DNA of 64,000 bases, taken from Trichosphaerium sp. ATCC 40318. Lineage: Eukaryota > Protista > Tubulinea. The stretch is from assembly GCA_038496445.1 (NCBI GenBank), contig JALMLS010000208.1, positions 1-64,000 on the forward strand. Reading direction: 5' to 3'. The notes beneath the pieces are model-generated. The model was not told where the DNA came from. It saw nothing but the letters and a program-made list of their open reading frames with translations, and did not search any database. A program made the position numbers and the translations under genes. Each line of letters starts with the position of its first letter. Within the stretch, counting starts at the first letter, position 1. Of this stretch, positions 4,501 to 57,408 are shown in pieces.

Positions 4501-4754
4501 TTTTATTTAAATAACGAAAGTGAATACTACTCTGGCGGAAGCTGTGAAAGTAGAATGACTTGTTCTGTCATTGTTTCATCGTATAACAAAACACGTATGA
4601 GATAAGTAGTGAAATCGATTTGTCACGTGATAAAATCACTGTTGACTGGATTAAGACCATTCAAAATAATCACGTGAATATCCATGTTTTTCTTCTAGTT
4701 GTTTTACCCTGCGTCGAACCAAACCACTTCATTGACGCAAGCTATAGATTAAAT

Positions 4755-26332: not shown

Positions 26333-27119
26333 CTAGTTCAATTTATTTGTAATTAGTTAATAAATAGGCAATATTTATAAGCCATTGTAATGTTGTTTTG
26401 TCTATTGTACAATTTTCTAACTTTTGGATTATCATATTCTTTTTAAGTGTGTGCTATAAATAGCTTCTCAACTTATCCTGACTTTGGTAACAGACCTGCA
26501 TTTGGAATTGGTACTGGTATTTTTGGGAGATCCACTCGAAGAGGTCCACAAGGCACTAAATAAAATCAAAACCAATCATATCACAATAGCTTCTATTAAC
26601 AAATGCTGGTGACACTGAATTGTCTGCCTTTTCTGGCGTCCTTTCATTACTAAGATCGTTTGCCTCTGTTTAATCTTATAAAGTACTCGCCCTGTATCAA
26701 AAACGTAGAGGTGGCCGCTAAACGGCTTAGCCGATACCAGACCACGACCACCTCTACAATTATGTCAATATCAATTTGCTCTGTATTTGTAGCTTAACGA
26801 ACCTCTTTAAAATTATCAAAAACACAACACTGACAACCAATGATCCGCATGGGAATCCAGACTTCTGCTTTTAATCAAACAGACAATATTTCATCAAAGT
26901 TTTAAGTAGAAGATGATAAAACAGAATTTATGGCTGTACACGTGTTTTCTCCGGTTACAGAAGTTGGGTAAGCTTAGATTACTCTCATAAATCAACTACA
27001 AACAGCCTACAGCCCTTATACAGAACCTGCTCGAGCAGAATCACCCACATCCCACAAGACGTTTCGTTCAAGTTTTCAGCCTGACAGGTCAAATATGGAA
27101 ATAAAAATTTTTGTGGGAT

Positions 27120-27455
27120 TGTTAAATCACGTGGGTTTAAACTTGACTATGTGAGGGCATCACATTTTAAAAGGTGAGATTCGCCAGTTCTGTCAGAAGT
27201 GTCAAATCCATCAGTAGAGCTGACAGATCAGGCAGAAACTGGATTTTTTTGTTTGTTTTTATCAAGCTAAAAGCCCTGGTAGCGCCCACAGCAACGTCGG
27301 TAGTGTTGTGAGGTTTTTATGTCAATATAACTGCTTTGTTGTTTCAATGCTGTGAGAGCGCTTCTGTTAGCGTGGAGTAGGCGCTAGCGCAGCGTTTGTA
27401 AGCTATGTACACATATGTTGATTTTTAAAGCAAACACAAACGGCAAATAGTGTTG
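27120..27455. repeat. Dispersed two-module repeat shared with 57850-58225
   Basis: CTGTCAGAAGTGTCAAATCC...GGCAGAAACTGG recurs at ~58167-58225 in the same orientation; 27285-27455 recurs as reverse complement at ~57850-58025. Confidence 0.75.
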
Positions 27456-27624
27456 GTGGAAAGCTCAAGCTTTGTAGATCAATAACCTTTTAATTCGCTT
27501 TTAGCTCAATAAAGGATGTTGACAATTCGATTGACTTAACACAAAAATACAATCTCATGCTTAAGTTTACCTAAAACCGTTTAGCGCTAGCTTTGAAACT
27601 ACTTCTTGCTAGTACACAGAAAAA

Positions 27625-28620
27625 ATGAACCAAAACAGCGCATTCTTTGATGAGATACCTGTTGAAGTCATTGTTCATATTCTACAATACGTTTCGCTCT
27701 TAACTATGCACTCAGTTGTTCGTACATCCAAACTTTTATCAAATATCGCAATAAATCACGTGGGATACGTAAACACAAGGAAAATCGTTCTTAAAACACC
27801 AAAAAAGCTGAAAGAGCTCTTCAAAACACTGCCACACCTCATACACACCAATAGTATTACTCTTCGATTCTCTATCAAACAAAAGCATCTAAAGTATCTA
27901 CAAGGAGTATACAATCTAAAATTAAAGATAAAAGACTTGCTGAAGGTTGATTTTACAAACCTCAAGATTGTTAACTGTATTAACCTCTTTCATTGTAAGA
28001 ATCTTACTGATGATCACCTTGTACAACTTGCTGGAGTACACAAGATTATATTGTGGAACACAAATGTGACAGATAAGGGTGTTAGAGCGTTGTCTGGTGT
28101 TCACACGATTGACTTACGCAATTGTATAAATGTTACAAGCGATGGTATTAAAGCACTAGCTGGTGTTCATTCTATTAAACTTCGTGGCTGTAGTGTTACA
28201 GACAATGGTGTTAAGGCATTGGCTGGTGTTCATAAAATTCTCCTGGATAAATGTGATGTAACAGATGATGGCATCAAAGCGTTGGTTGGCGTTCATACGA
28301 TCAGAATATATAGTTGTGACTCTGTTACAGATGATGGTATCAAAGCACTAGCAGGTGTTCATAAAATTGACTTAAGCATGGATCATATTACAGATGATGG
28401 CATCAAAGCGTTGTCTGGTGTTCATACTATTAGACTACAGGATTGCCATAGTGTTACAAATGATGGTATCAAAGCATTAACTGGAGTTAATACCATTGTT
28501 GTGGAATATTGTATACAAGTTACAGAAGCTGGCATAAAAGCATTGGAGGGTGTTCCTTCTGTAACGTTTTTTGATGAACCTGTAGGTGGTTTGCTTCAAC
28601 GTTTACTTCGTAAAAAGTAG
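27625..28620 (+). CDS. F-box + LRR protein, intronless
   Basis: MNQNSAFFDEIPVEVIVHILQY plus GVH repeats; close paralog of 4755-6125. Confidence 0.9.
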   Translation: MNQNSAFFDEIPVEVIVHILQYVSLLTMHSVVRTSKLLSNIAINHVGYVNTRKIVLKTPKKLKELFKTLPHLIHTNSITLRFSIKQKHLKYLQGVYNLKLKIKDLLKVDFTNLKIVNCINLFHCKNLTDDHLVQLAGVHKIILWNTNVTDKGVRALSGVHTIDLRNCINVTSDGIKALAGVHSIKLRGCSVTDNGVKALAGVHKILLDKCDVTDDGIKALVGVHTIRIYSCDSVTDDGIKALAGVHKIDLSMDHITDDGIKALSGVHTIRLQDCHSVTNDGIKALTGVNTIVVEYCIQVTEAGIKALEGVPSVTFFDEPVGGLLQRLLRKK

Positions 28621-29644
28621 CAGTTTATGTTGACTTACAAATAAAACCTGAACCTTGCACATGTCGTGCAACAGAACATTCCAATAATTTAAGTGTTGTT
28701 TAGTACTACTACAATCACTTGCAAAAAGGCTTTAGAAATTTATCATACAATATTGAAATACATGTTGTACAGATCATCTATTAGACATATTTCAAACCCC
28801 TGACCACTTTCTTCAATAATAATATAACAAACGAATTATTATTTTGTGAGAGTGGAACATGCAAGAAAGGAGAAAACGAGAGCTGTGGCAGTCATTTTGT
28901 GTTTTTCTATTTTGCCTGTTAACTAGGTAATGATATTCAGTCAACGGGCTCTGTGACACTCCGGATATAACGCTATATAGCGATCCATAACTTGTGTATA
29001 CAAACCTTACTTATTAGTACCTATACAACACCACTTGTTATCTTGTCAGTTACAAACTATTTTGATTTTTAACACTGTTCTATCATTAACGTCCAAAATG
29101 ATATACGTGCTAGTAACGTCCTTTCTCAAGTTCTTTTTGAAATCATTCAATGTAAGTTCTTTGAAGATGGTAAGGTTTATAATCAAGTAAAATTGTTCAC
29201 GTTTTACAGAAAAAGGACTCAAAGCTTAGAGATGACGTTTGTCTCAACCGTGTGTTGATCCATGTTTAGAACTACCTTCTAGAAGTTTTACCTACAAGCT
29301 ATGGATTGGTTGTAATGTATTACTTGGTAGATACAAGGTATGTAGCAAATTAGAGAACCCACTGTAGGCTTTCTTAGGATGCCAAACTTGCCAAAATTCA
29401 AATAGTGCGCCACAAGTAGCCCAAGGGACTTTCCGGGATAAATTGGCCAAATTTCTAAAGCAAAAAGAGCTTGTACACTACACAAGTAGTGCCAGCAAAA
29501 ATACCTTTAGAACACATAAGCACATTTCTGGCTTTTACTTTTATTGCGTCTTTATACGTTGAATAAACATACATGGTAAGGATTCAAGCTCAAGAGCATG
29601 CACATAATAAAATTGTATGAGTTTAATTCTTCTTCTATCAATGC

Positions 29645-30955
29645 TCAATGTGTCATCAATTGTGCGCCCAAAGCTAAGACAGCAGCTGTTGTACACTTTG
29701 TACCTTTTACAACTATTCCAAAAGCACCTTGAAGAGCTGATATCCCTTCATCTGTTACAAGACGACAATTCTTTAGACTTATTGTGTGAACACCTGCAAG
29801 AGCCTTAACACCTCTATCTGTTATCTTGACACAGTCATTCAACCATATCTTGTGTACACCAGCAAGGTGAATGACACCTTCATCTGTGATATCACTGCAA
29901 CCATTCAAGCGGATAGTATGCACTCCTGCAAGTGATTTCAATCCATTATCAGTTACACCTTTACAGTTGTTCAAATTTATCCTATATACCCCTTTTAAAC
30001 TTTCAAGGCATGAGTCTTGTACGATTGTCCTTTGTAACTGGATGGTGTGAATACCGGAAAAAGCTGATATTGAAGCTGCAGTTAGCTGAATACACCGATT
30101 CAAGCCAAGCACGCTGACACCAACAAGAGGTATGATATCTTCATCTTTAACCTTTAAGTGAGATAAGATGGCAGTATGTACACCTGATAGTTGTTTCACA
30201 TGATCAAGAATAACATTTTGACAATCAGAAATATCAATAGCACGAAGACACATATCACCTTTTGTGTTAATAGCTATAGCCAAATGTGAAAAACAAGATC
30301 CATCAATATTGTCACAACTAGACATTAATATTGTGTGGACTCCAGCAAGTGATTTTAAACCATTGTCAGTGACTTTGCAAGATCTGATATTTATCCAATG
30401 AACTCCAGCAAGTGATTTTATCCCTTCATCAGTTATCTTGTTACATTTTGCAATATTTACTTCGTAAGCACCTGAAATAGCTTCCAATGACTTATTTGTC
30501 AACTGGCTCATGTAGCTCACATCTATCGTATGTACACCTGACAAGAATTGAATACCTTCATCTGTGATATTGGGACAACTGAATATATCTATTTCTTTAA
30601 CACCAGCAAGCGCCTCGAGGCACTTATCACTCACTTTCATATTCCATAGTTGTAATCTTGTAACACCAGCTAACGAACATATTTCTTCGTCTGAGGCCTT
30701 GAACTTCCGGAATGATACAAAAGTATTGTTTAAAAGCAATTTTCGGCCGATTAAACTCTTTATGGACTCTGAAGACTTGATAAGGATTTTACCGTAACCA
30801 ACGTGTCTGTGGATAATGTCATAGAACAGCCAGCACGTCTGAGCAACCGAATATCGCGTTTTATTCGCAGTATACTCAAAAACGGCAGTAATGAGCTCTG
30901 CCGGCATTGTTTCAACAAAATGAGAGCCTGTGTCTTCACACCGTATACTAGTCAT
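29645..30955 (-). CDS. F-box + LRR protein, intronless
   Basis: Likely ATG 30955 (MTSIRCED); ETMPAELITAVF F-box; ITDEGI/GVHTI repeats. Confidence 0.88.
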   Translation of the reverse strand: MTSIRCEDTGSHFVETMPAELITAVFEYTANKTRYSVAQTCWLFYDIIHRHVGYGKILIKSSESIKSLIGRKLLLNNTFVSFRKFKASDEEICSLAGVTRLQLWNMKVSDKCLEALAGVKEIDIFSCPNITDEGIQFLSGVHTIDVSYMSQLTNKSLEAISGAYEVNIAKCNKITDEGIKSLAGVHWINIRSCKVTDNGLKSLAGVHTILMSSCDNIDGSCFSHLAIAINTKGDMCLRAIDISDCQNVILDHVKQLSGVHTAILSHLKVKDEDIIPLVGVSVLGLNRCIQLTAASISAFSGIHTIQLQRTIVQDSCLESLKGVYRINLNNCKGVTDNGLKSLAGVHTIRLNGCSDITDEGVIHLAGVHKIWLNDCVKITDRGVKALAGVHTISLKNCRLVTDEGISALQGAFGIVVKGTKCTTAAVLALGAQLMTH

Positions 30956-31508
30956 TGCAATAGATAACAGTTGGAGTTGTTTGAGTTTATAGTGTTGCCT
31001 TAGCAAGCGAGTTAAGCACAAATTTTGTGAAGGGTTACCACTACTCAATCACGTGTGGGAAGTTGAAAACTAAATCCTCCTGCGTGTGTTTGTTGTCCTC
31101 CATGTCAATACAAGTACTGTCTTTGGTACTTTTGCTAATAAGTTCTTGCAATGTAAGGTTCTGTAAAGAGTATTCCATTTCGCATCAAATACACGTTTAT
31201 TGTTAAGTTCTGTTTTCGCTTGGTTCTACTCCTCGCAGTGATCTATCTCTTACAGCAGGGTTCAAGTACCCAACAGTAGAAAAAACAAAGAGATAAAAAA
31301 TTTTGGTTCACCTCTGCTGGATTCTGTACAAACTTTTCTGCATTCACTGCCTGTACAACAGACACTTCTTGCCATAAATTTTAGTTGTACAAAGTCTGTT
31401 TCTTAGAAATCTGATTTTACGGCTGTAGACTGTTGACTTTGTATTTTACATAGCCAAGCTCCTTATTCTAAAACGTATAAAGCTCGGGTTGCACAAATAT
31501 TTTTATAA

Positions 31509-32374
31509 TTACATGTAGTTTTGAATTAGTTTTATGCCTCGTGCTTCAACATATTCTTTTGTTATCAACGTTCCTCCATGAACAACAAGACATTGGAGAG
31601 ATTTCAAACTCTTTAAACTATCGTTTGTAATAGCTCTACAAAAAAACAAAACCTCCAATTGCTTGATGTTCTTTAGCAGTTTGATTCCTTCACTATTTAA
31701 TTCTGATATCCGAAAATCATCAATACAAACTGTATGTACATTAGCAAGATGTTGAAGCCATGAGTTATGAGCTTCTTTTTTAACCTCAAGTGTTATCTTA
31801 TGTACGTTCTTCAGGGCCTCCACTCCATCATTTGTAATGTACTTACAACTTCTAATGTCAATTGTATGAACATTTTGAGAGCCTTCAATGAGACGTCTGT
31901 TATTCTTGTACCGGCCAACGAAATGGCGTGAATACTATATGTTCCTTGTTTTAATAATCCAAGGATACCTTCATCTGTAATATTAGAACAAGACAAGTTG
32001 ATAGTATGAACGCCACATAGTGATTGTAATCCTTTGTCTGTAAATAGCACTCTTCCTAGATGTATTCTGCGAACACCAGAAATACAAGCCAAGTCGCTAT
32101 CTGACAATTTCAACAATACTGGGACAATAATAACTGAGTTTACAAGTAATGGGCTACCTCTAAGAACGCGGCAATCAGATGGCCTATCAATACAAATGGT
32201 TTTAAAGCCAACATTATGCCGAATAATGTCATTGAACATGTGAGAAACTGTAGTAACCTGAATACGTTTTTGTCTGTTTAAATAACGTAGAGTGTGGGTT
32301 AATGTCTCTGGTGGTAACATTTGAAGGTTATTTACTTGTTTTGTACTGGTTTGTTGGAGTTCTGTGTCAGACAT
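31509..32374 (-). pseudogene. F-box + LRR gene with frameshift near 31870
   Basis: LQMLPPETLTHTL F-box; LRRs split over two overlapping ORFs. Confidence 0.7.
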
Positions 32375-40440: not shown

Positions 40441-40487
40441 CTATCGTCTTACAACTCAGTTTTTTGTTATTGTTTACTTTGTACTAG

Positions 40488-42557
40488 GTGACATACAGTG
40501 GACCGCTGAGAAGTGAGACTTCTACTACTACATTTACAAACTTCAGGTTGAATTGCGCTTTCAAGCTTGGTAGCCGCACGTGGAATATTGCCGGTTTCTT
40601 TGCTGCCGATGGTAACGCTGCGGAAACTTCATCTACGTCTGGTAATAAGTGGCGTTGTATATTTACTCCACCGTTTGATGGTAAGTGTCTTTATTTTCTG
40701 TTCGGAATATTCTAAGTTTTGACGTTTGATCTACAGGAACATACACGGTTATCGCTTCTTTCAGAACTGGTACTGATGTCGCGATGTCTTTTAGTCCGAC
40801 CGCTGGAACAGCTACTTCTTTCAATGGTAATTATCAAACGTTTACTATAAGTAGTTCTGGTAGTGATAAGCGGCACGTGATCTTCACTTTTTCGAAAAAA
40901 ACTAAATTATCGTTTAGGAACAACGGTATCTTGGAGTATGTTGGCGAACACTACATGAGATACTCAAGAACAGGAAAATATTTTATAAAGGGTGGTACTA
41001 ACTCTCCTGAAAACTTCTTAGGTAACCGTTTACAAGTGTGACATATCTTCTAATGTTGTTTGTTTAACAGGATATTCTGGGTTTGACAATACACCACAAG
41101 CCAAGCACCGGTATCAACCTCATTTAAGCGACTGGGAGGAAGGTGATCCAACATGGAAGAACGGCACGGGTAAAACTATGATAGGTACACAAACAGCGTT
41201 TTAGCTCCTTTTAATACATTGTGTAGGCGTGTTGAATTACCTTGCAAATAAGGGTATGAACTCCATTCAATTCCTTACAATGAACGCTCCACTTGGAGAA
41301 GGTACATACTATTGTTTGGTTTCTTTTCATTAAGCGTTTACAGGCAAGGACGTCTATCCTTGGATATCAACAAGCTCTAATGATATGTTTAAATATGATG
41401 TTAGTAAACTTGCTCAGTGGGATATCGTCATGACTCACATGGACAGAAAAGGTACATCCACTGATATTTATTATAAGATCATTAATGGTTCTAAAAGGTC
41501 TGATGCTTCATATTGTGACTCAAGAGACTGAGAACGATCAACAACTTGACAATGGTAATCTTGGTAGAATTAGAAAACTCTACTATCGTGAAATGGTTGC
41601 TCGCTTTGGATATCACACTGCGATCACGTGGAATATCGGCGAAGGGAATACTAATACCGACAGCCAAAGAAAAGCGTTCATTGATTACATTGATAGATTA
41701 GATGCGTACAACCACCTAATCGTTTGTCGTGCACATTTTACTGAACAAGTGCGTATCCTATACACCATTGTATTTGTCCTATTGTAACTGGCTTGCTTAG
41801 GATACAGTTTATGGACCTCTTCTTGGAAAAGCTAACTTTAACGGAGTTTCACTACAAGAACCAAGGCCTGATCTAGTTGCAATTGATACCAAAACATGGC
41901 GGACAAGATCTGTATGTATTCCAACCCGCAGACTTGATTTTAATTGATTAATAATTGTTAGCATAATCTTGGTGGTTTTAAATGGGTTGTAACAGCAAGG
42001 TGTCCAACCTGATCCTCCAAGCCTTCAACACGACTTTTTCCGAACTCATAGTCTTTGGGGAAATCTCTTGCAAGGTATGTGAACAAACTGAAAGAGCGTG
42101 GAATACTGACTTGTTGTTAAGGTGGTGCTGGTGTTGAATGGTATTTCGGATATCATGATGATCTTAACTTGGAAGACTTCCACTCACGTGATTCTGTTTG
42201 GGGTTGGACAAAACATGCTCTGGACTTTATGGATAGGTAGCAAACTTTATTACTACAAACGACTACTAACAGATCTCTAGAATCCCGTTTGTGAGTATGA
42301 GACCTTGTGATATTACTGGGTTCTACGGATATTGCCTTAGACATGATAATTTCTTTGTATTGTCTTTGCCTACCGGGGGTTCATTGAGCTTGGTTTGGAT
42401 GATAGGTAGTGGCACATGGCAAGTCCAATTCTTCAACCCAAGAAATGGTGTGTATAACACATACGAGAGCATCGTTAACAAGAAAATTACTGCTCCAGAT
42501 ACACAAGATTGGATTGCTATTGTTAAACCACTATCATACACTATCCCTACAAACTAA
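40488..42557 (+). pseudogene. DUF5060-like bacterial-type putative glycoside hydrolase, copy 1 (decayed)
   Basis: Exon-by-exon paralog of 53462-56380; WNIGEEN is WNIGEGN; ~23-nt frameshifting deletion at ~41995 removes SDEIGPAS; no matching N-terminal exons seen. Confidence 0.7.
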
Positions 42558-42841
42558 GTTAAAAATCAATAAAACAATTTTTTATTGCAGTCCCACAAAC
42601 GTTATTTTACAAATTTCTCAGCTACTCTTGCCTGTGTGTCCTAGTTTTTAACACAATACATCATCACAAAAATTAATGTCATACAACTGTTGAGTCTTGG
42701 CTTGAAGTGTTTTACTTTTGTTTTAACACTAATGGAACACTATTTCATCCCAAGCAATGCACCTGTCAAGTAATTATCACGTTTGTAATCCAGATCCAAG
42801 AAATCTCTTTTTTATTATCAATGATATATCCAGTTTTGTAC

Positions 42842-43351: not shown

Positions 43352-43383
<32 letters not shown>

Positions 43384-43398
43384 AATAACGATCTTTAT

Positions 43399-43455
43399 AC
43401 AGCCAACCCACCTCTAGCCTCCAAAGGGCTACGCCAAAGCGTTTGGGTTGGCTGT
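43399..43455 (-). other. Three-way-junction hairpin in LINE-B 3' UTR
   Basis: Perfect 12-bp stem ACAGCCAACCCA/TGGGTTGGCTGT enclosing two small hairpins with UUUG loops in the sense RNA. Confidence 0.7.
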
Positions 43456-44167
43456 TGTAATGAATGCTATGGGATTACATTATTATTGTTAGTTGTGTTG
43501 GGAAAGAGGGGTATTGCATTTGCAATAGGGAGAAATTGACGCATGTGTGTAACTTTAGCTTGCCATCTAATATAATGCATCGGGACATGTTGGCCCTTTG
43601 ATTTTTTTAAGGAATGGGTTTCACGGCATCTGTTACGGTACTTAGTGTATAAAAAGGTGATGTACATGTGATTTAATCGTTTAGCTAGGGCGTTGATTGA
43701 GTTTGTTTTGTTAGTACCGGTTTTCTTTTTTAGTTCACTGATAAGTTCTTCTGTAACGTAACCTTGAGAGCCTCTAAAATTGGTAGGGTCGTTGTTGTTA
43801 TTGGTTAGGTACCAGGGTTTAATATTGTAATCTTTTGTTTTGATTGTGAGGGAACTACCAAGTTTAGCTAGTTCTATTTGGTCAGGCGATGGGTAGGTTT
43901 TATTCTTGGTTGGCCACTTAGATTTGCAGAAAAGGTTGTTACCGCCTGCATGTTTGTTGTATAGAGCGATAGGATTGTTTTTATCTTTGTTTTTTCCTAA
44001 AAATTCTTGTATTATTCTATTTGTGTGATATTTTATATCTATCTTAGATTCAACGTTATTGCATGTGCAAAAATGTTTGAAGTTTTCTGTGCATTGAATG
44101 TTTTTTTGTTTACATAAAGTACAATAACTATTAGGATATTTGATCTGGTTATAAAGTTGATAAGCTT

Positions 44168-45277
44168 CAGTAGTAAAATAGAAATGGGAATTTTTAAGTA
44201 ATCCACCCTGTTTTCCTATGGGAAAAGTAGACGGAAAAACTCTTCCTTCATTCCCATTGAATTTATATGAAATTCCGTAAGTATTACCCATAGAATTCTT
44301 AGAATATTACTTTTGGAATTGTGTATGTATTATATATAGAATTCTCTATGTATTCTTTATAGCATTTCTTAATGTATTTTTTGTAGATTTCAATAAAAAA
44401 TACTTTATAAATTACACAAAATATTATTTGATACTTTGGTTCAGATTTAATGCAAAGTCATTTTATTTATTGATCATTACAAATACAAACATCCTAAATA
44501 ACACGTACAAGTTAAATATATCGTGTCTTCATAAACGAAAGAAGTAATTTGATCGCATTTGGTTTTGAGAGCCTGAACAATAATTAATGCGTTTGTAAAT
44601 GCTAAATTAAGAACGCGTAGGGTTTTTTGATAAATTAAGTGGAAATAAACTTTAAAAACAACATACTTGGAGTTAATGCTTTAAATACATCCTTTAATGG
44701 TGTAATAAGGCTGTTGCAATGCTTTAATCATCCTAAAACAGATAAGTAAGAGATATTTATGTTTAAGTGATTTTCCAAACCACCTAAAACGCGTTCTCCG
44801 TTACTTTTTGGATTAACGCACTTTAACCTGTACCATTGGTTTTTTCACCTTTAATAATAACATGTGGATATTGTTCGCTAGAAAAACCTATGTACCTAAG
44901 GTGTCGATGGTTTTTTGCAAATATAAAACTAACCCTAACCCTAACTTAATTTGTACTTTCATAAACCTCAACCCTAGCCCTAACCCTAACCCTAACTAAA
45001 TTAGTACATTATTTGCTGGATTTTGTACAATATGGCTCCTAAAAGTACGCACTAATACTTTACCTCTTAATGAGTTCCAACATAAACGCAGTAAGACTAA
45101 AGGTCACATCCATCAGTGGTAAAATGAAAACGGGATTTTGGATATAAATCCCACTAAATTCCTTTGTTTTAGGGATTTTTAAGGTAATTTGTGAAGAATT
45201 CTTATTTTTATTTTTTTTATGGCAGGATTTTTGATAGAATTACCATAATATTCCCTTAAATACAGAATTTTCAGAAT
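44168..45277 (+). mobile_element. MITE copy A, right end inverted together with 81 bp of LINE-B
   Basis: 44168-45032 is nearly identical to 48887-~49753; 45114-45277 is the reverse complement of the right end of copy B. Confidence 0.9.
44929..44996 (+). repeat. Internal (CCCTAA)n telomere-like repeats in MITE A
   Basis: CTAACCCTAACCCTAAC and AACCCTAGCCCTAACCCTAACCCTAAC; same blocks at 49649-49717. Confidence 0.85.
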
Positions 45278-48200
45278 TATATTAAATTTTTTCTAGATCT
45301 TCCATGGTCTTTAGCATTGTTTTGTAAACTGAGTACATGTTTTTCGTGTTGTATGGATTTCAATTTTCTGAATAGGTTACCTTGTATTACCCCTGTCAGT
45401 TTTGTTATAACCCAATCTTCACTTCCAACCGGTATATTTTTTGAAGGTATGACTGTAGTAGTTGATATGCCTGCCATTCTATCTGCTATGTCATTTAGGT
45501 CTATGAACAATGATTTTATTTTTTTTGAATATTTCTTTTCAATCTGTGTTAACCTATGCGCAATGTTAAGTCTATTACGTTTCTGTTTATCTGTTTTTGT
45601 ATGACTTGGAATCCATTCAAATGCTGTCGAACCAGATCTTATACTTAGTTGGTGGTGAATGCGATTTAGTGTATGAGCGTGATCAACTTTCCTTTGTTCA
45701 TTTATGGGTTTGTCTTTCCAATTTTCAATACCATTGATTGCTGATGTGGAGTCTACTAGTATCATGATGTCTACTTCTAAGGGAGCTAATTTGAGTGCAA
45801 GTTCTATTGCTTCCAGTTCTGCATTCGTAGATGTTTGTTCAAATAGCACAGTGCGGTTGAATTTCATCATTGTGTTGAGTACAACTGAGAAGTATGCACC
45901 TTTAGAAGTTACTGAACCGTCAGTAGCCAAGACATATTTTGATTGAATTTTGTTGCAGTTAGCCTCAAATGTCTGCTTGTCCATTCTGTTAATTACGTGT
46001 TCTGTTCTATGAATTGAACTATCAGATTTATGAATGATTTTTATTCCTAGTTGTTTACAAATTTGTGTTGCTTGGCATATCATATGATTAGGGTGGAATT
46101 TTTGATGAGCTAGGCGTATGCTTGCATTTGTGATCGATTTGGCTAATTTGTTTGTACTGTTCATGCCATTAGAGATTAAATTACTGATATAGCCAGCATT
46201 TTGTAAGTCAACTAATGGTTCAAGGCCAAGACCAGTATGTTTCAGAAAGATTCTTTCTGGTTTTAGTTTCCAAGGTATTTTTGCGTCAGATCTTAAAAGA
46301 TCTGCAGCATTATTATCACATTTTTTTAAGACTATCGGATTGATGAACATTGCGTTGGTTACAAATGATATGCCTGGGTTAATAACACGATTGATTATTG
46401 TTGTTTTTTGAGTTGCGTTGAAGCCCTTGAATCAAATCAGAGATAGACCATTAGCATGTCTTCTTTTAATTTCAGTCGTTTGGTCTGTGTTGTCTAGTCT
46501 CAGGTTAATTAAAATTCCTAAGTCTTTATATGATTCTTCTGGTTTAAGAAATGATATACGTTTATTGTTTGCTTTGGGTGGTGGAAAGAGCGCTGATGGA
46601 TCAGATCTGCACACATAGGAAAATGCCGATTTTTTCTCATTAATCTTCATGCCATAGAAACTGCACCATTCTTGAAGTTTATTGAACATCTTTAACAAGT
46701 CTTCATATGAGTTTGCTATTAGTTTTATATCATCAGCATATGCTATGATAGGTACCTTTATGTTAGTATTGGGTATGTGATAACCACAGTTCATAGACTC
46801 TATCTCTTTTATTAATACATTTGCAAACAGTGTAAAAAGTAACGGGCTGAACCCATCTCCTTGTTTGACTCCTTTTTGGATGTTGATAGGTTTTCTTCCC
46901 ATTGGTAATATTATGTCAGCTTTAATCTCCTTAAAAAGGCTTAAGATTATTTGTTGGATTTCAGTATCAAAGCCTTGATGTTTTAACGCATGATCAAGTG
47001 CCCAGTATTCTACAGAATCGTACGCTTTTAAAAAGTCAATGTAAATAATAAAGATATCTTTGTTATTGGCTTCAGCGTTTTCAATAATATTTCTGTAAGT
47101 TCTTTGTGCCATGTTGATGTTTCGGCCTTGGTAAAAACCATATTGAGATTCGCTCATTATCTTGTTTTTTTCCACAAACATTGCCACCCTGTTGTTAAAA
47201 ATTTGTGAGTAGATTTTATACATGGAATTCAGCAGTGCTATTGGTCGATAGTTTGAGGGATCGTGCTGGTTCCCCTTTTTTTTGAGAAATATTAAGTTAC
47301 TTGACTTCCATATTTCTGGTATTGTTTTGTATATTCTACAGTCATTGTACATCATAAGAAGCATGTCCTCTATCTCTGGTGGTAAGTTTTTGTAAATTTC
47401 CATTCCTAGATTGGTATTTCCTGGTGCTTTGAAGGCTTTGAGCTTGTGAATAGCATTAAGCATTTCTATTTTTGATATTGGTTCGTGGAATATTTCATTA
47501 TTATATTTTGTATTGTTTATTTTGAAGGATTCAGAAATAAGCTGTACTGGTATCTTCTGTTGGTATTTGTTTGGCTTGCAACTAGGGTGAGGATATTTAC
47601 TAGCAAAGATTGTTGCCCACTTCTTAGCAAAAACGTCTAAAATGGAATTTTGATTGAAGAAAAGTGTTTTGATGCCATTGAGGTTGCCTTCAATGTAACG
47701 GACAAACTCAGATGATTTTCCTTTATTTATCTCATATCTTTTTATATCTCTAATTTTTTTAAACAAGGCTCTTGAAGTTAGTTCTGTCATGGCTTTGCAG
47801 TAATAGTTTTTGTGTGACATATCCATCTTGTGTTTGCAACCACGTAACCATTTGTTATAGGTTTTGAGGTTTGTGTCAATAACGTCACACAATTCCATTC
47901 TTATAAAGCTCTTGTTATAAAAGGTGGGTAATAAATGTATTCGTGGATTATCATTGTCACGTGTTATTCTTTTATTGATTTCATTGGTTTCAGTCTTTAT
48001 TTTATTTATCTTAACGTTAGTTTCTAAAGTGAATTTTTGTAGTTTGTTCAATTTTCTGATCATAGATTCTATCCTCATGTATTCACCATTGTTCTTGAAG
48101 TCGTGTTTCTTACTTTTAATGTTTCTTTTTGTGTGATGTTTCACATGAGTATGGATATCTCTTGTTAACATGTATACAAAGCTGTTATATTCATTATGTA

Positions 48201-48886
48201 TTGAGAATTCGTCTGACATAGCTCTTGCTGCCTTAAATTCCTTTTTTAGATCAGTAATATCCATTGTGGCAAGTATGGATTTCAAGTCTATGTTTCTTGT
48301 TCTTAGACGATTAGGATTTGACATAGGTTTGTATTCTATAATGTCTTGATGATCCATTGATTTTGATAACTTACAAAGAATGGGGCTATGGTCTGATAGT
48401 GTCTCATTTACCAGTGTTATTAATTTTTTTATGTTATCTGTATTGGAGGTTAGTAGGTAGTCAATACGTTCTAATCTTAAGAATTTCCTAGCAGGTTTTT
48501 CTGTTACAATAATTTGACTATAGGTAAATTTATGTTTCGTTTTGGGTAGACAATGTACTGGGTCAAACAAACCAAGACCTTCTTTGAAAGTGTTTATTAA
48601 AGCAAGATATTTTAGTTCAGATGTGTGGCATTTTACTAATTCGTTGTTGATTAGTGCTTGTCTGTCATCTGGTGATTGGGCTATATTCCAATCTTTGATG
48701 AACATTGTATTAGTAAATTTGTATTTGGTGCATAGGTTTGTTGTAAGTTTTGTTAGTATTTGTAATTGTTCAAGTTTAGACTTTAGGTGGTAAGCGCTTA
48801 TATATACATTGTTAAGTAAGGAAACATTTTGTTTATAGCGGTCGTTGATGGTAATTGTTTGGACAAAGGGGTATTTGGTTTCAATA

Positions 48887-49918
48887 CAGTAGTAAAATAG
48901 AAATGGGAATTTTTAAGTAATTCACCCTGTTTTCCTATGGGAAAAGTAGACGGAAAAACTCTTCCTTAATTCCCATTGAATTTATATGAAATTCCATAAG
49001 TATTACTCATAGAATTCTTAGAGTATTACTTTTGAAATTGCGTATGTATTTTATATAAAATTCTCTATGTATTCTTTATAGCATTTCTTAATGTATTTTT
49101 TGTAGATTTCAATAAAAAATACTTTATAAATTACACAAAATATTATTCGATACTTTGGTTCAGATTTAATGCAAAGTCATTTTATTTATTGATCATTACA
49201 AAATACAAACATCCTAAATAATACGTACAAGTTAAATACATCGTGTCTTCATAAACGAAAGAAGTAATTTGATCGCATTTGGTTTTGAGAGCCTGAACAA
49301 TAATTAATGCGTTTGTAAATGCTAAATTAAGAACGCGTAGGGTTTTTTGATAAATTAAGTGGAAATAAGCTTTAAAAACAACGTACTTGGAGTTAATGCT
49401 TTAAATACATTCTTTAATGGTGTAATAAGGCTGTTGCAATGCTTTAATCATCCTAAAACAGATAAGTAAGAGATATTTATGTTTAAGTGATTTTCCAAAC
49501 CACCTAAAACGCGTTCTCCGTTACTTTTTTGATTAACGCACTTTAACCTGTACCATTGGTTTTTTCACCTTTAATAATAGCATGCGGATATTGTTCTCTA
49601 GAAAAACCTATGTACCTAAGGTGTTGATGGTTTTTTGCAAATATAAAACTAAACCCTAACCCTAACTTAATTTGTACTTTCATAAACCTCAACCCTAGCC
49701 CTAACCCTAACCCTAACTAAATTAGTACATTATTTGGTGGATTTTGTACAATAATTCTGAAAATTCCGTATTTAAGGGAATATTATGGTAATTCTATCAA
49801 AAATCCTGCCATAAAAAAAATATAAAATAAGGATTCTTCACAAATTACCTTAAAAATCCCTAAAACAAAGGAATTTAGTGGGATTTATATCCAAAATCCC
49901 GTTTTCATTTTACCACTG
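48887..49918 (+). mobile_element. Non-autonomous Tc1/mariner-type DNA transposon (MITE copy B, 1032 bp)
   Basis: Imperfect TIRs CAGTAGTAAAATAGAAATGGGAATTTT / CAGTGGTAAAATGAAAACGGGATTTT, TA on both sides, no ORF, clean excision restores the LINE frame. Confidence 0.92.
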
Positions 49919-51036
49919 TATGTTTAATTCGATGAGATATTGATTTTTTTGTTAGCATTAATAGTCCACCAAGAGGTTTAGCAAGATTGGGGTTTATTTT
50001 TAAGGTCCTGCGTTGTATAACAGAGATGTTAGTATCTTCTTTTCTTATCTTCTTTGCTTTGTAAGCAACATATCTAGATTTGGTTTCATGTAATGTTGGT
50101 AGGTTAAAAGAATAATCATAATTTTTGAAATGTGTTTTCATTATCATTTTGAAAGTATGACTCTTGGTTTCTTCAATGTCTAAGTGGATCTCTTGTAGGC
50201 AAGCTATGTCCACCTTTTGTCTATTTATTGTTCTAGAAATTTCTTCAGCTTTTCTTTTAAAGGCACCACGGATATTCCATGAGATGATTGTGATGTCGTC
50301 AGTGGATCTTCCTCCACCAATTATTGGTTCAATCACTGAAAGTGTATTAAGGTTTCTTAGGTTATAACTGGTTAGTTTTATACCTTTACATAATGGTTTG
50401 GTATTGAGGACAAGAGTTGCATTTTGGCTAATTAGTTTTAGTTTAATTGCTTTTTTGTATAGGTCATTTGTAAAGGACGTTGGATCCATTTCAATCTGAC
50501 GTTTATTAATACTGAATGTAGTTTTAGTGTTTACAATTGTCTTTGGCATTTCCTCTGGTAACGGTTGCCTTCTGATATGATTTGATATGCTTATACTTTT
50601 TGCTTGTAGATAGATAAAAGGTTGACAGATAAGGAGAAAGAAATTGATTAAATCGATTTGTTTTTGAATCTTATTTGTTTTAGAATTACGGCTATTGACT
50701 TTTATTTTAATTACAGCAATGTTATATGAACACGAAACCAGGAGAAATAGAAAACAGAGAGAACACCAGGATACTTTATTAACTGAATAGTGGATTTTTT
50801 TACGTTTTTGTTTATGAGAGAGATTTTTTTGAAGACGAGCACGTGAGAATAGCAATGTAAAATAAATTATGTTGATAGTTTTTCTTATGTTAACAAAAAA
50901 GAAAAAGAGAACTTGTGTGAGAAGGAGGAATAATATAAGACACGACACAATAACAAGAAAGTTTATTAGTGAGACAAGGGATTTTGATAAAGGCAAACGT
51001 TTTTTGGTAAGTGTCTCAGGCTGTGATTGGTCACAT

Positions 51037-52168
51037 TTATCTAGTGATTCTTTCATCAGAGAAGAAAACGCCAGTGGATCTATTTCCAACTTCGAGTACA
51101 AAGTGCTTGTAGAGGTAGGTGTTGATGAGGTCACCTTTTTGGTTGGAATTGCGAGTTTCAATGATGTAATTGTCGGTTCTCGAACCTCCATTGGCTGAGC
51201 AATCGTGTGCAACAGAGTGGACGAAGATCTGAAATGTATTAGTTTTTTTGTAGAAGAGATAAAGTGAATAAAAGGATAACGTACACCAGTGTATGTGAGC
51301 ATTCTTGCTACATCGTGAGCTGCATGTTTGGAACTTAATTTATCCATGTAGATTTTACGAGCAAAGGGAACGTTACATCTAATTGGGAAGAGAGTCGCTT
51401 TGCCATTGATCATCAATTTGAGTTTGTTAATACCACTCGAGTTTGCCATGATTACATGATTTTTCTGTTCCAGTACATGAAGCGTGATTTCAAAGACTTT
51501 GACATTGCCGTTCCTGTTTTCGAAGTCTCTTGTATGTTCGACAAAAGGGATGTATTTGGTAGGCCAGGCGTTGGTAATAGTGGTAGTTAAGAATTTTTCA
51601 GGTAATTGAATTATCCAATTGCGATTAACAACACAGTTGTAGATGAATTTAAAAAAATTCCTTTGACAGGTGGTATCAGCCATGTCTTCGCAGGTTGGAA
51701 GGAAAACTTGGTGAATACGGCAAGGGTTTTTCGCGATCTTGAGGTGCGTTTGAATTTCTTTTGCTAAATCGATGGTTTGTGTTGCTGTGAGTTGGGTGTA
51801 GTCGGTTCCGTAAATGAGAAAGGTGCAGTTGTTCCATTCGAAGAAACAACCTTTAACTAAACTTCCAATTTGTGCCAGTCTTTCTTTTTCCATTGACGCT
51901 AATGCGAGCTCACAAGTAGCAGTTTTCCATCTGCATTACGTTCAAGTATGATGGATTGAGCTATAGTGGTTGCTGAGTTGAGTCTTTTCAGTACATCTTC
52001 TTGTTCTTTGGTCTTGAGGATGGCTGTTAAAGAGTTTCGGTAGGATTCTTTGAGGACAGGGTTTGTGATGAGTGCAAGTTCTGCTTCGGCTTGTTCTTTT
52101 GTTAAGTTTTCAAAGTATTGACGGTTGAGTTTCTTGTCTTGAAAGTAGGTGTTCTTTGGAGTGGCCAT
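51037..52168 (-). CDS. LINE-B ORF1p, spliced form (exons 52168..51285 and 51228..51037; 1-nt frameshift near 51925)
   Basis: MATPKNTYF start; splicing gives RKIYMDKL..HDVARMLTYTG/IFVHSVAHDC..TDNYIIETRNSNQKGDLINTYL..FFSDERITR*, an RRM-like pattern completed only by splicing. Confidence 0.7.
51229..51284 (-). other. Predicted spliceosomal intron (56 nt) in LINE-B ORF1
   Basis: GTACGT donor, ACTAAT branch motif, TTTCAG acceptor, phase 0. Confidence 0.8.
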
Positions 52169-53461
52169 GCTTGTTGCTTTGTGATGTTTTGCGAGGTATG
52201 AGCTTTTGTGGTGCAAATCCTTGATCTGTGAATGGGATTCTAAACGTTTACAGGAAAAACAGACGGGTTTTTGTGTTGTAAATTTCGTAATAATCACTGA
52301 ACAAGAATTAAATTTTACCTGGAATTCTGTGCTCCGTGTTATTGCGTTTTGATGTCCTTTATAACTGTTAGGTGTAAGGGGGTGTTGATCTGCAATGTTT
52401 TGCGAGAAATTTACTACCACCGGTTCGAGGAACGTGATTTCAACTTTATGCGCGCGCAAAAAACAGATACAAATTATTAGGAGAAAAATAACTTTGTTTT
52501 TATTTATTATTGAGATTGTCGTTGATACAATAAGGTTTAAAAACCATAACAGCCAGAGTAAAATATGTGAGTTTGAATTAAACTGCTCGTATTTTGTATC
52601 ACGACACGTAGCCTGAGCCGTGTGGCACCAGCTGGGCGACCATTTTGGTCTCTCTGCCCAACCACCGGTTTTGCCTTGAGGTGTATTCTGAGACCTCTCC
52701 TCAGCCATATTAGTTAGCTTGGCAGCCTTTTCAACTCTTTGCGAGCGAATTTTTTGCTTACGCGAGGACATCACTGTACTTGGCCCCGCGGACAACTTCT
52801 CGGCCAACGATTGCGTCTCCGTATAACCTGGTTTGTCAGTAGCCGCGAAACCAAGTCCCAATGTGATCCATTGCAACGTATTTTTGTTATACGAGCTCGT
52901 AGCGTTGTTATTAGGGGATACCACGGTAGGTGGGTAACTCCTCAACCCCCTCAAAATAACCCACAAACACAGAGTCTTACAAGGTCATAATAGTTGACCA
53001 TGTGACGTTACTATGGAACTCGCATAGTAGGCTAAACACGACTATTTGTAACTAGCGCTTTTGGTTTTTAGTTTGCGCCACATTTTTAGTTTAAAGTCAA
53101 TTTATGTAAGCGCAGGTAGCGTTAATGTGTTTTTATTTCGTTATTTATGTCACGTGAGTTTTAATATTTTAAATAGCGTGGCATCCTCTTCTGTACACTA
53201 ATTAACCTGAACTAATATTCATTCGTTAAGTTATACGGAAAGGTGAGTTGTCATCATCCCCCCTCAGTTTAATGAGTACTGTGTTTAATAACTCTGACTA
53301 TGGCTACAAAAATAAAAAATTATTGGCTGGCATAGATATAGATATCACACGTGATTTAAAATGGTTCAGTTTTCGCGATTACTGAGTTTCTCACGAAATG
53401 TCTAACTTTGTTATAACGCAGCGTACAAGTTCTAATAAACTAACTATCACGTGATTGTAAC

Positions 53462-56380
53462 ATGCTACTATGCGCATCTTTGTACTTTGTTTTACTAGCG
53501 CAAGAAGCGCTAGCACTCATGCTTTGCAGTTTCCTAACAAAACTGCAATCTGTTCGCAAGCTTGATTTTATCATGTGGCAATACAATAAGGAGTGCTCAC
53601 CAAGACAGTATTTACATAACCCTGTTGTAAGTTTTCTGGAAATGTCAGGAAACGCTAGTAAAACAAAGTTCGGGCTATGTTTACCCGGTGTGACCGCCTC
53701 GTAGGTAACTTATACTGTACATGTACATTATAATTGAACACGGTTCAGTAAAGCTATAGTAGAGAGTTGTAGGATGTTTGAAAAAGTACACAAGAGTTTT
53801 GACATTGGTTAAAAACTTTTCTACGGCGATTTCTTTTTGCAGTATTTTTCCGTTTTAGCAGTGTACCGGCACTATCCACGTTTTAGAAGACCACAAACTG
53901 CGATACCAAGATAAAGCTACCTTACAAGTGCGTGTGAATGCGCTTAAGCGAGGTTGTGTACTAGCGTTCCAAACATAAACTCTGTACACACGCAAGGAAC
54001 AACACAGATACAACTATGAAGCTGTTACTGGTGCTAGTCCTGCTTACAGCGCAAGTACGTTATTTTTACCCAGTAATCTTGGTACTAACTTGCTATGTAA
54101 GGTATTGTCACAAAATCCTCGAATAACAGGAAGTCGCAAGCGATTTGAACCTGTAGTGGTATGTTTTACCTCAGTTTTTAATCTTTGTTTCCACCTTTTT
54201 CTGATACCTGAAGTCACGTGCCTTTTCACTCCCTTTACTTCAGCATCAATAACGCTTCAATAGATAACATACACTGGACCATCACGAAGTGAGAGTTCTG
54301 CTGCTACATTTACAAACTATAGACTGAACTGCGCTTTCAAGAGAGGTCGCCTTACGTGGAACATTGCTGGTTTCTTTGCTGCCGATGGTAATGCTGCTCA
54401 AACTTCAGCCACATCTGGTAATAAATGGCGTTGTATCTTCACTCCACCTTTTACTGGTACGTTCACAGCCTTTGTTATCTCTCCAGTTAACTTTGACAAC
54501 AGGAACATACACTGTTATCGCTTCTTTCCGCACAGGTAATGATGTCGCAATGTCTACCAGCTCGACCGCTGGTACAGCTACTTCTTTCAATGGTAACCAA
54601 CGAACGTTTTCTATCACTGGCGTTGGTAGTGACAAGAGGCATGTGATTTCTATTTTTTCTTCATATTTTCTTTGATTCACAACAAAAACTGAACTATCAT
54701 TTAGGAACAATGGTATCTTGGAGTATGTTGGCGAACATTACATGCAATATTCAAGGACAAAGAAATACTTCATAAAGGGTGGTGCTGACTCACCGGAAAA
54801 CTTCTTGGGTACAGTTTTTTTGTGCTAAATAATCTCAATCCTATGCTAATTATCGAATAGGATATTACGAGTTTGATAACACACCACAAGCTAAACATAG
54901 ATACCAACCTCATCGCAATGACTGGAAGAATGGTGATCCAACATGGAAGAACGGCAAGGGTAAAAACATAATAGGTATGCGCACGCTACAACAGTTCTTA
55001 TTATTAACGTCCTCTGAAGGTGCTTTGAACTACCTTGCAAACAAAGGCATGAACTCCATATACTTCCTGACAATGAACGCTCCACTTGGAGATGGTATGT
55101 ATAATTTTTGGTTTGTAGATCTGTTCACTAAAGAGTTACAGGCAAGGACGTCTATCCTTGGACTTCGCCAAACGCTAGAACTAAGTATGATGTTAGTAAA
55201 CTTGCTCAGTGGGATATCGTCATGACTCACATGGACAGAAAAGGTACATCCACTGATATTTATTATAAGATCGTTAATGGTTCTAAAAGGTCTGATGCTT
55301 CATATTGTGACTCAAGAGACTGAGAACGATCAACAACTCGACAATGGTAATCTTGGTAGAATTAGAAAACTCTACTATCGTGAAATGGTTGCTCGGTTTG
55401 GATATCACACTGCGATCACTTGGAATATCGGAGAGGAGAATACTAATACTGACAGTCAAAGAAAAGCGTTCATCGATTACATTGATAGATTAGACGCTTA
55501 TAAGCACCTGATTGTTTGTCACACATATCCAAACGACCAGGTATGCTTCTTACAACAGTGTTAGCTCTTTCTAACTGGTTCGTTTAGGAGAAAGTTTATG
55601 GACCTCTTGTTGGAAAAAGGAATTTCTTGGGAGTTTCTATTCAGAAACAACCAAATCAAGTCGCATCAGAAACAAAAAAATGGTGGACAAGATCTGTACG
55701 ATTTAGTCAACACAAGCAGCCATGCACCGAGATATAACTCTTTATTTTAGGAGAACAATGGTCATAAATGGGTTGTTACATCTGATGAAATAGGTCCTGC
55801 TAGTGAAGGCGTTCGTCCTGATCCTCCAAATGGTAACCACGTGACTGTCCGCACTCGTGTTCTTTGGGGAAATCTCTTGCAAGGTATACGAACAAACTGA
55901 AAGTGTGGGAAATACTGACTTGTTGTTAAGGTGGTGCTGGCGTTGAATATTATTTCGGATACCAACAACCTCATAACGATCTTAACTTGGAAGACTTCCG
56001 CTCACGTAACTCTGTGTGGGGTTGGACAAAGCATGCTTTGGATTTTATGGCAAGGTATACGCTCTGTTATAACCATACTTAAACTAACAATCTATCTTTC
56101 TGTAAGGCTTCCATTCGTAAGTATGCGACCAGGTAACAATGTTGGAAACGGGTATTGCTTCGAGCATAACAGATTCTTTGTTGTGTCATTGCCTACCGGT
56201 GGAACATTGAACTTGAGCAGTAAGATAGGTAGTGGCACATGGCAAGTCCAATTCTTCAACCCAAGAAACGGAGTATACAACAGCTACCAGAGAATTAACA
56301 ACAAGAGAATTACTGCTCCAAATAACCAAGATTGGATCGCTATTGTTAAACCAACGTCATACACTATTCCTAGAAACTAA
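53462..56380 (+). CDS. Secreted DUF5060-like bacterial-type putative glycoside hydrolase, copy 2 (apparently intact, many introns)
   Basis: Signal-like MLLCASLYFVLLAQEALA; GFFAADGNAA, KWRCIFTP, KGGADSPENFLGY, YLANKGMNSIYFLTMN, YDVSKLAQWDIV, QETEND, WNIGEEN, SDEIG, WGNLLQGGAGVEYY, FNPRNG, DWIAIV, which I recall from bacterial DUF5060 proteins. Confidence 0.72.
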
Positions 56381-57408
56381 CTCAAAACAAGTCAACTCAA
56401 TCAATAAACTTCTTTTTGCACTATTGTTATGTTCACAAATGTTGTTCTTGTCTCGTATACCCACAAGTTTCAGTTTATTTCATTGTGCTTATTGACTCGT
56501 ATTGGTTAGATGTGCTCGACCTTTCTGTATTGAGGTTTAACTAAAACCTTTCCTTTAGGAGCAATATTCACATGTCCCACTTGGCGTATTCATTAATATT
56601 CATTAGTGTGTGTTCAGAGAACTACTACTAATGCTCGGATTTTTAATAACAATATCGACATTTAACAGTGGTGTCGACCCATCAAGGTCTTGGAATATAA
56701 AGGTAATCGGTAAAAGTCTAACCTGTACCCGCGGTTTGAAGTGCGGTATCATCTTTTTCACACGCCAGCATGCGGTACAACATCGACGAACTTTGTACCA
56801 AAAAAAACTCAACTACGGCCTTTGAGACTGCTCAGGAACGATAGATACAGTGTTTTTATTGTGTTTGATACATGTTTTCCTTTTTTACAGATACAAAGTT
56901 TCGTTGACACTTGACGCGTAATGTGCTAGCCTTATTTTGTTCTGCGATTGCGTAAAACTGAGTTTAAAATTGGGTTGTATTCCGGAGCCTGTATAAAAAT
57001 GATCCTATACCACCTGTCCTATCTAAACCTAAATCTTCAAATACAAATTTAAAAAAAAGACTATTCAACAGGTACTGCGTTAAATCACGTGGATTATGCT
57101 TTTGTGTAGTCTACTTTCGGCAAACCTTGAAACCCGCTCAAGGTTTACCTAGACAACTCAAGGGCACTGCGCTCGCATGGGCTTCGTAGATTGGTAACTA
57201 CAAATAAAAAATCACGGAAACTAGCTCGCTTGCGCTTCGCTAGACTTTTTCAAGCGCTCTGGTACGCTATCACGCATACACCCCCTATCTACTCATAAAA
57301 GTTGTAAATAACAATAAACAAGAGATAACTAATCACGTGGCTAACCTAAAAAGTGTACAGTACCGTATCCTAAAAAGAGTACAGTACTAGACTATAAAAA
57401 CTCTTGTA

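Follow-up and report, generated by a model that had tools for sequence, protein, structure and literature searches.

How one RNA of a long interspersed nuclear element (LINE) yields much of the protein of its first open reading frame (ORF1) and little polymerase is a long-standing question, to which the known answers are unconventional reinitiation, overlap and 2A peptides. Among elements with long terminal repeats (LTRs), Drosophila copia makes a 2-kb spliced gag RNA. In Ty1/Copia elements of Arabidopsis (EVD and its relatives), alternative splicing coupled to premature termination yields a short RNA for GAG alone (Oberlin et al. 2017, PMC5580714), and BARE1 of barley, a single-ORF element, makes a spliced subgenomic Gag RNA and keeps the RNA to be translated apart from the RNA to be copied (Chang et al. 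2013, PMC3735527). Full-text literature searches turned up no LINE or other non-LTR element reported to have such a switch. Here we describe LINE-B, an element in a 64,000-nucleotide stretch of Trichosphaerium sp. ATCC 40318 (contig JALMLS010000208.1, positions 1 to 64,000; hereafter the window), in which a candidate spliceosomal intron, retained or removed, would decide whether ORF1 is made alone or read through into the polymerase. We consider this account moderately probable, mainly on the grounds of frame-specific codon usage and conservation in relatives.

The proposed arrangement resembles Ty1/Copia in having one long frame, an intron whose removal would leave a short RNA encoding just the structural protein, a site for termination or polyadenylation close downstream, and an unspliced RNA that would encode the enzymes and be copied. 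However, the Ty1/Copia members have LTRs, encode GAG, protease and integrase and form virus-like particles, and their splicing has been shown by experiment, whereas LINE-B is a non-LTR element of the kind copied by target priming, its intron lies inside ORF1 and not around the protease, and it is known from sequence alone. Domain and repeat searches of LINE-B found no LTRs, GAG, protease or integrase; it would work like Ty1/Copia without being a member. With BARE1 and copia it would share the use of splicing to balance structural protein against polymerase within one ORF, although both of these are again LTR elements.

Host splicing also acts on human L1 RNA and gives rise to spliced integrated retrotransposed elements (SpIREs), and in LINE-B a LINE RNA would likewise be open to it. 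Human L1, however, is spliced at cryptic sites into by-products that are defective or regulatory, and its spliced copies are dead ends, whereas the putative intron of LINE-B appears to be conserved throughout a clade, and reading the end of ORF1 appears to depend on it. Penelope-like elements keep introns after transposition and are thus comparable in that new retroelement copies retain a spliceosomal intron, but they belong to another class (GIY-YIG endonuclease, telomerase-like reverse transcriptase), and we know of no two-product frame switch described for them.

LINE-B was analyzed as one copy in the window, which holds a second LINE, LINE-A. With a reverse transcriptase (RT), an endonuclease upstream of it, a target-site duplication and no LTRs, LINE-B is classed by its domains as a non-LTR LINE that bears RNase H and an endonuclease of the apurinic/apyrimidinic (APE) type. 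The RNase H domain follows the RT, as in I/Tad1-like or L1-group/Proto1 LINEs, and the RT relatives are unnamed giant-ORF LINE proteins. The element and the features around the end of its ORF1 are as follows.

43353-53262, minus strand: LINE-B, full length, with a 13-bp target-site duplication (TCATTAAACTGAG) at 53275-53263 and 43352-43340
51285-51893, minus strand: ORF1 exon 1, 203 aa from the ATG at 51893, in a frame open from 51935
51229-51284, minus strand: candidate spliceosomal intron, 56 nt, 3n+2, phase 0 (GTACGT..ACTAAT..TTTCAG)
51040-51228, minus strand: exon 2 of 63 codons, read in two frames, of which the spliced (-1) one is coding-like and the unspliced one is stop-free but non-coding-like
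51037-51039, minus strand: TAA stop of spliced ORF1, as read from the letters
50862-50967, minus strand: candidate internal poly(A) site, AATAAA at 50967-50962, 69 nt past the spliced stop, then a T-rich tract
50550-51036, minus strand: linker, stop-free in the unspliced frame, with a hydrophobic translation
50310-50549, minus strand: diverged ubiquitin-like domain, from Met 50549-50547 to GGG 50318-50310, 5 codons before the endonuclease
49921-50294, minus strand: N-terminal half of the APE-type endonuclease (Exo_endo_phos, 20.8 bits; cut-off 24.5)

When the 56-nt segment is removed, ..MLTYTG is joined to the 63-codon exon 2, which ends at TAA; when it is kept, the frame runs without a stop across the intron, exon 2 and the linker and on into the endonuclease (SWNIRG). 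A sequence-only reading of this DNA had described a 56-nt GTACGT..ACTAAT..TTTCAG segment of 3n+2 length at 51284-51229, a 63-aa spliced exon followed by TAA at 51037, and an unspliced frame open into SWNIRG. All three hold, the exon spanning 51228-51040, the stop 51039-51037, and the unspliced frame having 0 stops in 330 codons. In 2000 shuffled sequences the mean was 19.4 stops and no sequence had fewer than 8, and the two remaining frames have 23 and 26; the open unspliced frame of LINE-B is beyond chance.

Candidate introns were sought by scanning the sense strand for a host-type donor with a YAG acceptor 40-100 nt on and a frame-shifting length. The 56-nt segment was the sole match in LINE-B, and it opens the 63-codon frame. 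A pair of host paralogues (40640-40780 and 54416-54546) provides introns for comparison, as their exons are ~90% identical around an unalignable intron that measures 56 nt (GTAAGT..ACAG) in one and 46 nt (GTACGT..ACAG) in the other, and further likely host introns are 44-70 nt long with GTACGT, GTACGC, GTATGT or GTGAGT donors. In size, donor and GT..AG ends, the LINE-B segment matches these host introns. It is also an island of composition (G 5%, T 41%) whose edges fall exactly at the GT and the AG.

Codon usage was scored with cross-validated models trained on each element's own ORFs, stops excluded. Exon 2 of LINE-B scored +0.199 in the spliced frame, a value that 1% of out-of-frame windows reach, and -0.277 in the unspliced frame, lower than all in-frame windows. 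LINE-A has a counterpart on the opposite strand.

8656-8744, plus strand: candidate intron of LINE-A, 89 nt, 3n+2 (GTACGA..ACTCAC..TGTAG)
8745-8997, plus strand: exon 2 of LINE-A, coding-like in the spliced frame only

The scan returned six candidates in LINE-A, but only the 89-nt one opens a long frame (84 codons, compared with 6-20 for the other five). Its exon 2 scored +0.435 spliced and -0.296 unspliced, the reference values for LINE-A being 0.30 (standard deviation 0.11) in frame and -0.35 (standard deviation 0.13) out of frame. Judged by codon usage, therefore, the end of ORF1 in both LINE-B and LINE-A is coded in the frame that is reached only by removal of the segment, while the unspliced through-frame of both LINEs is simply kept stop-free.

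The RTs of the two LINEs are 30% identical, and their ORF1s cannot be aligned, in agreement with the sequence-only reading. That reading had also given both the same layout. The layouts do match, except that the unspliced frame of LINE-A is not fused in frame to ORF2: it is stop-free to 9355 and overlaps, in another frame, the ATG at 9333 of an uninterrupted ORF2 of 1639 aa.

We used this LINE-A ORF2 as the query to find relatives in public assemblies and examined four loci, L004, L005, L006 and L010; the proteins of the window were not part of the protein collection searched. Two loci from the first RT search, L002 and L003, were distant animal-like LINEs and uninformative. The closest database relatives carry RT and RNase H, in some cases also ubiquitin, on giant LINE proteins of 1800-2850 aa that are each encoded in a single frame, and their RTs are 34-37% identical to that of LINE-B, closer than LINE-A or arthropod elements. 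A search of metagenome contigs for closer relatives of LINE-B by RT gave matches at 22-28% only. The presumed clade would comprise the two divergent families of this genome together with members from metagenome assemblies and one NCBI genome assembly.

Splice signals, whose absence from relatives would have spoken against the sequence-only reading by its own account, are present in L004, L005, L006 and L010, each of which has a GT..AG mini-intron at the end of ORF1 (83, 59, 50 and 44 nt, respectively). With those of LINE-B (56 nt) and LINE-A (89 nt), all six introns are 3n+2; donors begin with GTAC in five of the six elements, and an ACTAAC-like motif lies close to the acceptor in four. In L004 both intron candidates are weak, the 83-nt 3n+2 one (GTACTA) being preferred over one of 109 nt (3n+1). 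Six 3n+2 introns and five GTAC donors are consistent with one ancient origin, after which lengths could change in steps of three only.

The unspliced frame of the relatives is stop-free to the endonuclease, save for one stop in the genomic copy L010, and the other frames have 9-68 stops. Codon scores again separated the two readings, with +9.9 bits spliced versus -16.4 bits unspliced in L005 and +6.7 versus -14.4 bits in L006. The spliced ORF1s of L006 and L010 are similar at E=9e-31, and their alignment is continuous over the junction (..FAQHRTNQDRKRFLAFC-AEGKLKVDGKTIAAT.. aligned with ..FAQVRTKDQRDKLIKLS-ERMRMDGYFIKWT..), whereas the alignment of their unspliced translations ends within three residues of the donor. 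Such junction-crossing homology between predicted proteins is the classic signature of a conserved intron, and it is the strongest single result of this analysis.

These comparisons bear on whether LINE-B could be an ordinary two-ORF LINE, seen here as a decayed copy with a frameshift inside ORF1 and with splice-like signals by chance. The copy does have another probable frameshift, a nonsense codon and two insertions, and the strict splice motif is no rarer than chance in the window. However, the arrangement recurs in LINE-A, with its uninterrupted ORF2, and in four relatives of other sources; L006 and L010 show homology across the junction, chance falls far short of accounting for the stop-free unspliced frame, and the composition island sits sharply and exactly between GT and AG. 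We therefore regard decay of a two-ORF element as very unlikely.

The frame could also change by -1 programmed ribosomal frameshifting, or by polymerase slippage at the A7 run that the 56-nt LINE-B segment includes, and not by splicing. A point in favor of such a change, and against an intron, is that A AAA AAA stands in the X XXY YYZ register in LINE-B with the -1 frame open from 51339 to 51040; similarly, T TTT TTC is in register in LINE-A with the -1 frame open across its segment, and every segment shifts to the -1 frame. Yet the downstream sequence has no unusually stable structure compared with shuffles (z-scores 0.12 and 1.27), and the 19 codons of LINE-A between the T run and the acceptor score -0.27 in the -1 frame, lower than any in-frame 20-codon window. 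In L004, L005, L006 and L010, moreover, the -1 frame has 1-5 stops inside the segment, and inspection by eye found no canonical slippery heptamer past those stops, L006 having a partial one only (T AAA AAC). GT..AG ends and a host-like length in all six elements are features of an intron and not of a slippery site, and frameshifting at typical efficiency would give more fusion than ORF1 protein, the opposite of what is needed. Taking both sides into account, we put recoding a shade below even the decayed copy in likelihood, although for LINE-B taken alone frameshifting is still a formal alternative.

If the segment is a spliceosomal intron, the short RNA would need a 3' end. The sequence-only reading had pointed to AATAAA at 50967-50962, ~70 nt past the spliced stop and followed by a U-rich tract, and this was borne out: the distance is 69 nt, and the 100 nt after AATAAA are the most T-rich of the region (47% T versus an element mean of 28%). 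An exact AATAAA also follows the spliced stop after 79 nt in L004 (at about 2193), 72 nt in L005 (about 2520) and 75 nt in L006 (about 2260), giving four of the six elements, where the background in those elements is one AATAAA per 230-540 nt. The spacing was noticed after the fact, and LINE-A is without it. On these signals, the chances that the candidate internal poly(A) site is used are about even.

Beyond this site, the linker has a codon score near 0 in every frame, and its translation is hydrophobic because the sequence is T-rich and purged of stops. It had been read earlier as a translated poly(A) region, which suits its T-rich hydrophobic part but not its last 80 codons, which form the ubiquitin-like domain. 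When the end of the linker was searched against PDB, the top matches were all ubiquitin, over residues 15-76 and ending at the C-terminal GG. The LINE proteins P0132 and P0140 have Pfam-verified ubiquitin domains; that of P0132 lies in the same place as the LINE-B domain and matches it in a pairwise comparison at E=0.001. Host deubiquitinases may thus cleave the predicted read-through product of LINE-B after GG.

Other LINEs free their polymerase in comparable ways, since L1Tc and other APE-type LINEs use 2A peptides for this. In each case the device lies just before the endonuclease in one frame, whether a GG-ending ubiquitin-like domain (LINE-B), ubiquitin (P0132 and P0140) or a 2A-like NPGP motif (L011 and L012); in LINE-B, however, the domain is diverged and weakly similar, and its cleavage is presumed. 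L011 (136-1300) and L012 (166-1300) represent a related LINE family without ORF1, in which a 370-codon leader is stop-free. Between the two, this leader shows no excess of third-position substitutions and many indels, and strong third-position periodicity begins right after the 2A-like GIEPNPGP, just before the endonuclease. This pattern directly supports the view that such stop-free stretches are read through and not selected as protein. In L004 (~2520-2620) and L005 (~3200-3260), hydrophobic residues lead up to an AXA-like motif (..LLLLLMVLMLCPSQAQA-SK.. and ..LLLVGIYYCTNLPTANA-GV.., respectively) just before the endonuclease, and both stretches resemble a signal peptide.

The linker also allows for an account in which removal of a genuine intron produces the ORF1 mRNA but no fusion is translated: the polymerase would start at its own ATG at 50549 by reinitiation or internal entry, and the stop-free linker would serve another purpose, such as escape of the long RNA from nonsense-mediated decay. 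The ubiquitin-like domain begins with Met, like ubiquitin fusions; the codon usage of the linker is not coding-like; and in LINE-A the unfused unspliced frame, ending at an ORF2 ATG in another frame, fits termination-reinitiation. On the other hand, avoidance of stops over 160-330 codons is sensible only if ribosomes read that frame, gene calls in the relatives cover the same region with one protein of 2200-2600 aa, and avoidance of decay can coexist with read-through. An independent start of the polymerase is in our view unlikely, though it deserves some weight.

Under the proposed switch, spliced RNA would give a complete ORF1 protein that stops at TAA 51039-51037, and it would probably be cleaved and polyadenylated at the AATAAA/T-rich site, about 70-100 nt downstream. 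Unspliced RNA would be translated through, giving a truncated ORF1, a junk linker, the ubiquitin-like domain, the endonuclease, the RT and RNase H, and host deubiquitinases would probably cut after GG to free the polymerase. LINE polymerases favor the RNA that encoded them, a cis-preference established for L1. With the polymerase encoded by unspliced RNA only, cis-preference would make the intron-bearing RNA the one that is copied, which would explain why the intron is kept in this copy flanked by a target duplication. The 13-bp target duplication around an intron-bearing copy indicates in turn that intron-bearing RNA was retrotransposed. Indels in the intron would have to be multiples of three to keep the long frame, and this would explain the six 3n+2 introns.

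A wider version of this proposal extends it to the whole clade of RNase H-bearing LINEs. An ancient, obligatorily retained intron would control the ratio of ORF1 to polymerase, splicing together with the internal poly(A) site giving the ORF1 mRNA and retention giving a stop-free polyprotein RNA from whose product the polymerase is freed by a ubiquitin-like or 2A module; only intron-bearing RNA would be copied, and the 3n+2 length would have been frozen since the origin. We offer this wider version tentatively, as it falls somewhat short of an even chance.

Several observations weigh against an intron switch in LINE-B. The window has 3 matches to the strict motif GTAYGT..ACTAAY..YAG where 2.9 are expected, that is, at chance level, and AATAAA occurs 26 times in LINE-B; the case must therefore rest on other evidence than these motifs. 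No homologue of LINE-B ORF1 was found by word-based search, by a metagenome scan or by phmmer against the N-termini of the relatives, and the ESM Atlas gave no lead. The only match in an exhaustive HMMER search, P0121, was a spurious repetitive protein. LINE-B ORF1 thus lacks the detectable homologue that a homology check of its own junction would need. The claim of the sequence-only reading that the intron switch is conserved and not due to chance is supported in part, by codon usage, host-type signals, four relatives and junction-crossing ORF1 homology, but stops short of a homologue of LINE-B ORF1; the support from relatives is an analogy of layout over 34-37% RT identity.

Further points on the same side concern the predicted proteins. 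The sequence-only reading had exon 2 complete a fold like that of an RRM (RNA recognition motif), and this found no confirmation: Pfam gave no match in LINE-B ORF1 or its exon 2, and permutation alignment of LINE-B ORF1 with the RRM-like modules of L004 and LINE-A was not significant. Single-sequence AlphaFold models of the exons, modelled apart, were poor (exon 2, all-beta, with a predicted local distance difference test score (pLDDT) of 62; exon 1, pLDDT 34). For the ubiquitin-like stretch, single ubiquitin units in PDB match at E about 0.3 only, Pfam finds no ubiquitin domain, and codon usage is neutral. Finally, splicing of LINE-B is predicted from DNA and not from RNA, and the copy is damaged, so that it gives no direct proof of function.

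If the proposal is correct, non-LTR elements would have a new way of making much ORF1 and little polymerase, through a conserved intron that must stay in the copied RNA but be cut out for the end of ORF1 to be read, and this would represent convergence with Ty1/Copia and with retroviral subgenomic RNAs. It would also explain the survival of the intron over many rounds of copying, since only unspliced RNA would encode its polymerase. For genome annotators, it would be a reason against calling such elements single giant genes. The predictions of the switch are sharp and cheap to examine, namely junction reads, 3' ends, indels in threes and few intron-less copies.

The remaining features of LINE-B lie at either end of the region considered above.

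52169-52990, minus strand: leader, with one frame stop-free save for 1 stop at the very start, the other frames having 18 and 15 stops
51902-52168, minus strand: N-terminal piece of ORF1, 89 aa, ATG 52168-52166, one frame off the rest of ORF1
48887-49918, minus strand: insertion of 1032 bp inside the endonuclease, of the type of a miniature inverted-repeat transposable element (MITE), with terminal inverted repeats (CAGTGGTAAAAT.. / ..ATTTTACTACTG) and a TA duplication
46435-48886, minus strand: C-terminal half of the endonuclease and reverse transcriptase (RVT_1, 122 bits, E=2.8e-35)
46432-46434, minus strand: single in-frame stop codon in ORF2 of this copy
45281-46431, minus strand: RNase H part of ORF2 (RNase_H, 39.1 bits; cut-off 25.8)
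44168-45280, minus strand: second MITE copy, rearranged, between the RNase H part and the C-terminal part of ORF2
43470-44165, minus strand: C-terminal part of ORF2, starting with a CX2C..C motif and with coding-like codon usage, stop at 43469-43467

The codon usage of the LINE-B leader is not coding-like. The leader of LINE-A (6446-7513) likewise is stop-free in the ORF1 frame without coding-like codon usage, and across both LINEs the other frames have 13-18 stops. These stop-free leaders suggest that ribosomes enter well upstream of the ORF1 ATG.

Damage to the copy is of four kinds if its two MITE-type insertions are taken with the in-frame stop and one probable frameshift. The frameshift is placed at the break in ORF1 at 51935-51902; a second intron was considered there and rejected because no acceptor restores the frame, and the break is for that reason read as a probable mutation of this copy. 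The Exo_endo_phos score of the N-terminal half is below its cut-off because the MITE splits the domain, and the endonuclease frame and endonuclease-like sequence resume beyond the 1032-bp insertion.

This MITE is a ~1-kb non-autonomous DNA transposon with TTAGGG-like repeats near 49700-49720, and its terminal inverted repeats and TA duplication therefore mark it as Tc1/mariner-like. The second copy is 97% identical to the first, with a 172-bp arm inverted and 78 extra nt.

LINE-B has a target-site duplication and no terminal repeats or LTRs of its own, and its sense strand ends 3' in a run of 29 T (T29), not in poly(A). At its 5' end, Rfam gave no match to a hepatitis delta virus (HDV)-like ribozyme, either at the gathering threshold or at permissive ones. 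Just before the tail (43353-43440) lies an inverted repeat (CAGCCAACCCA..TGGGTTGGCTG), where a 3' stem-loop is possible.

The element sits within a tandem duplication of an intron-bearing host gene, whose copies at 40485-42564 and 54261-56387 are 80-96% identical and 13.8 kb apart. Elsewhere in the window, 1269-6125 and 25170-32374 hold a cluster of F-box plus LRR_6 genes and one MORN_2-repeat gene, in which introns are mostly absent.

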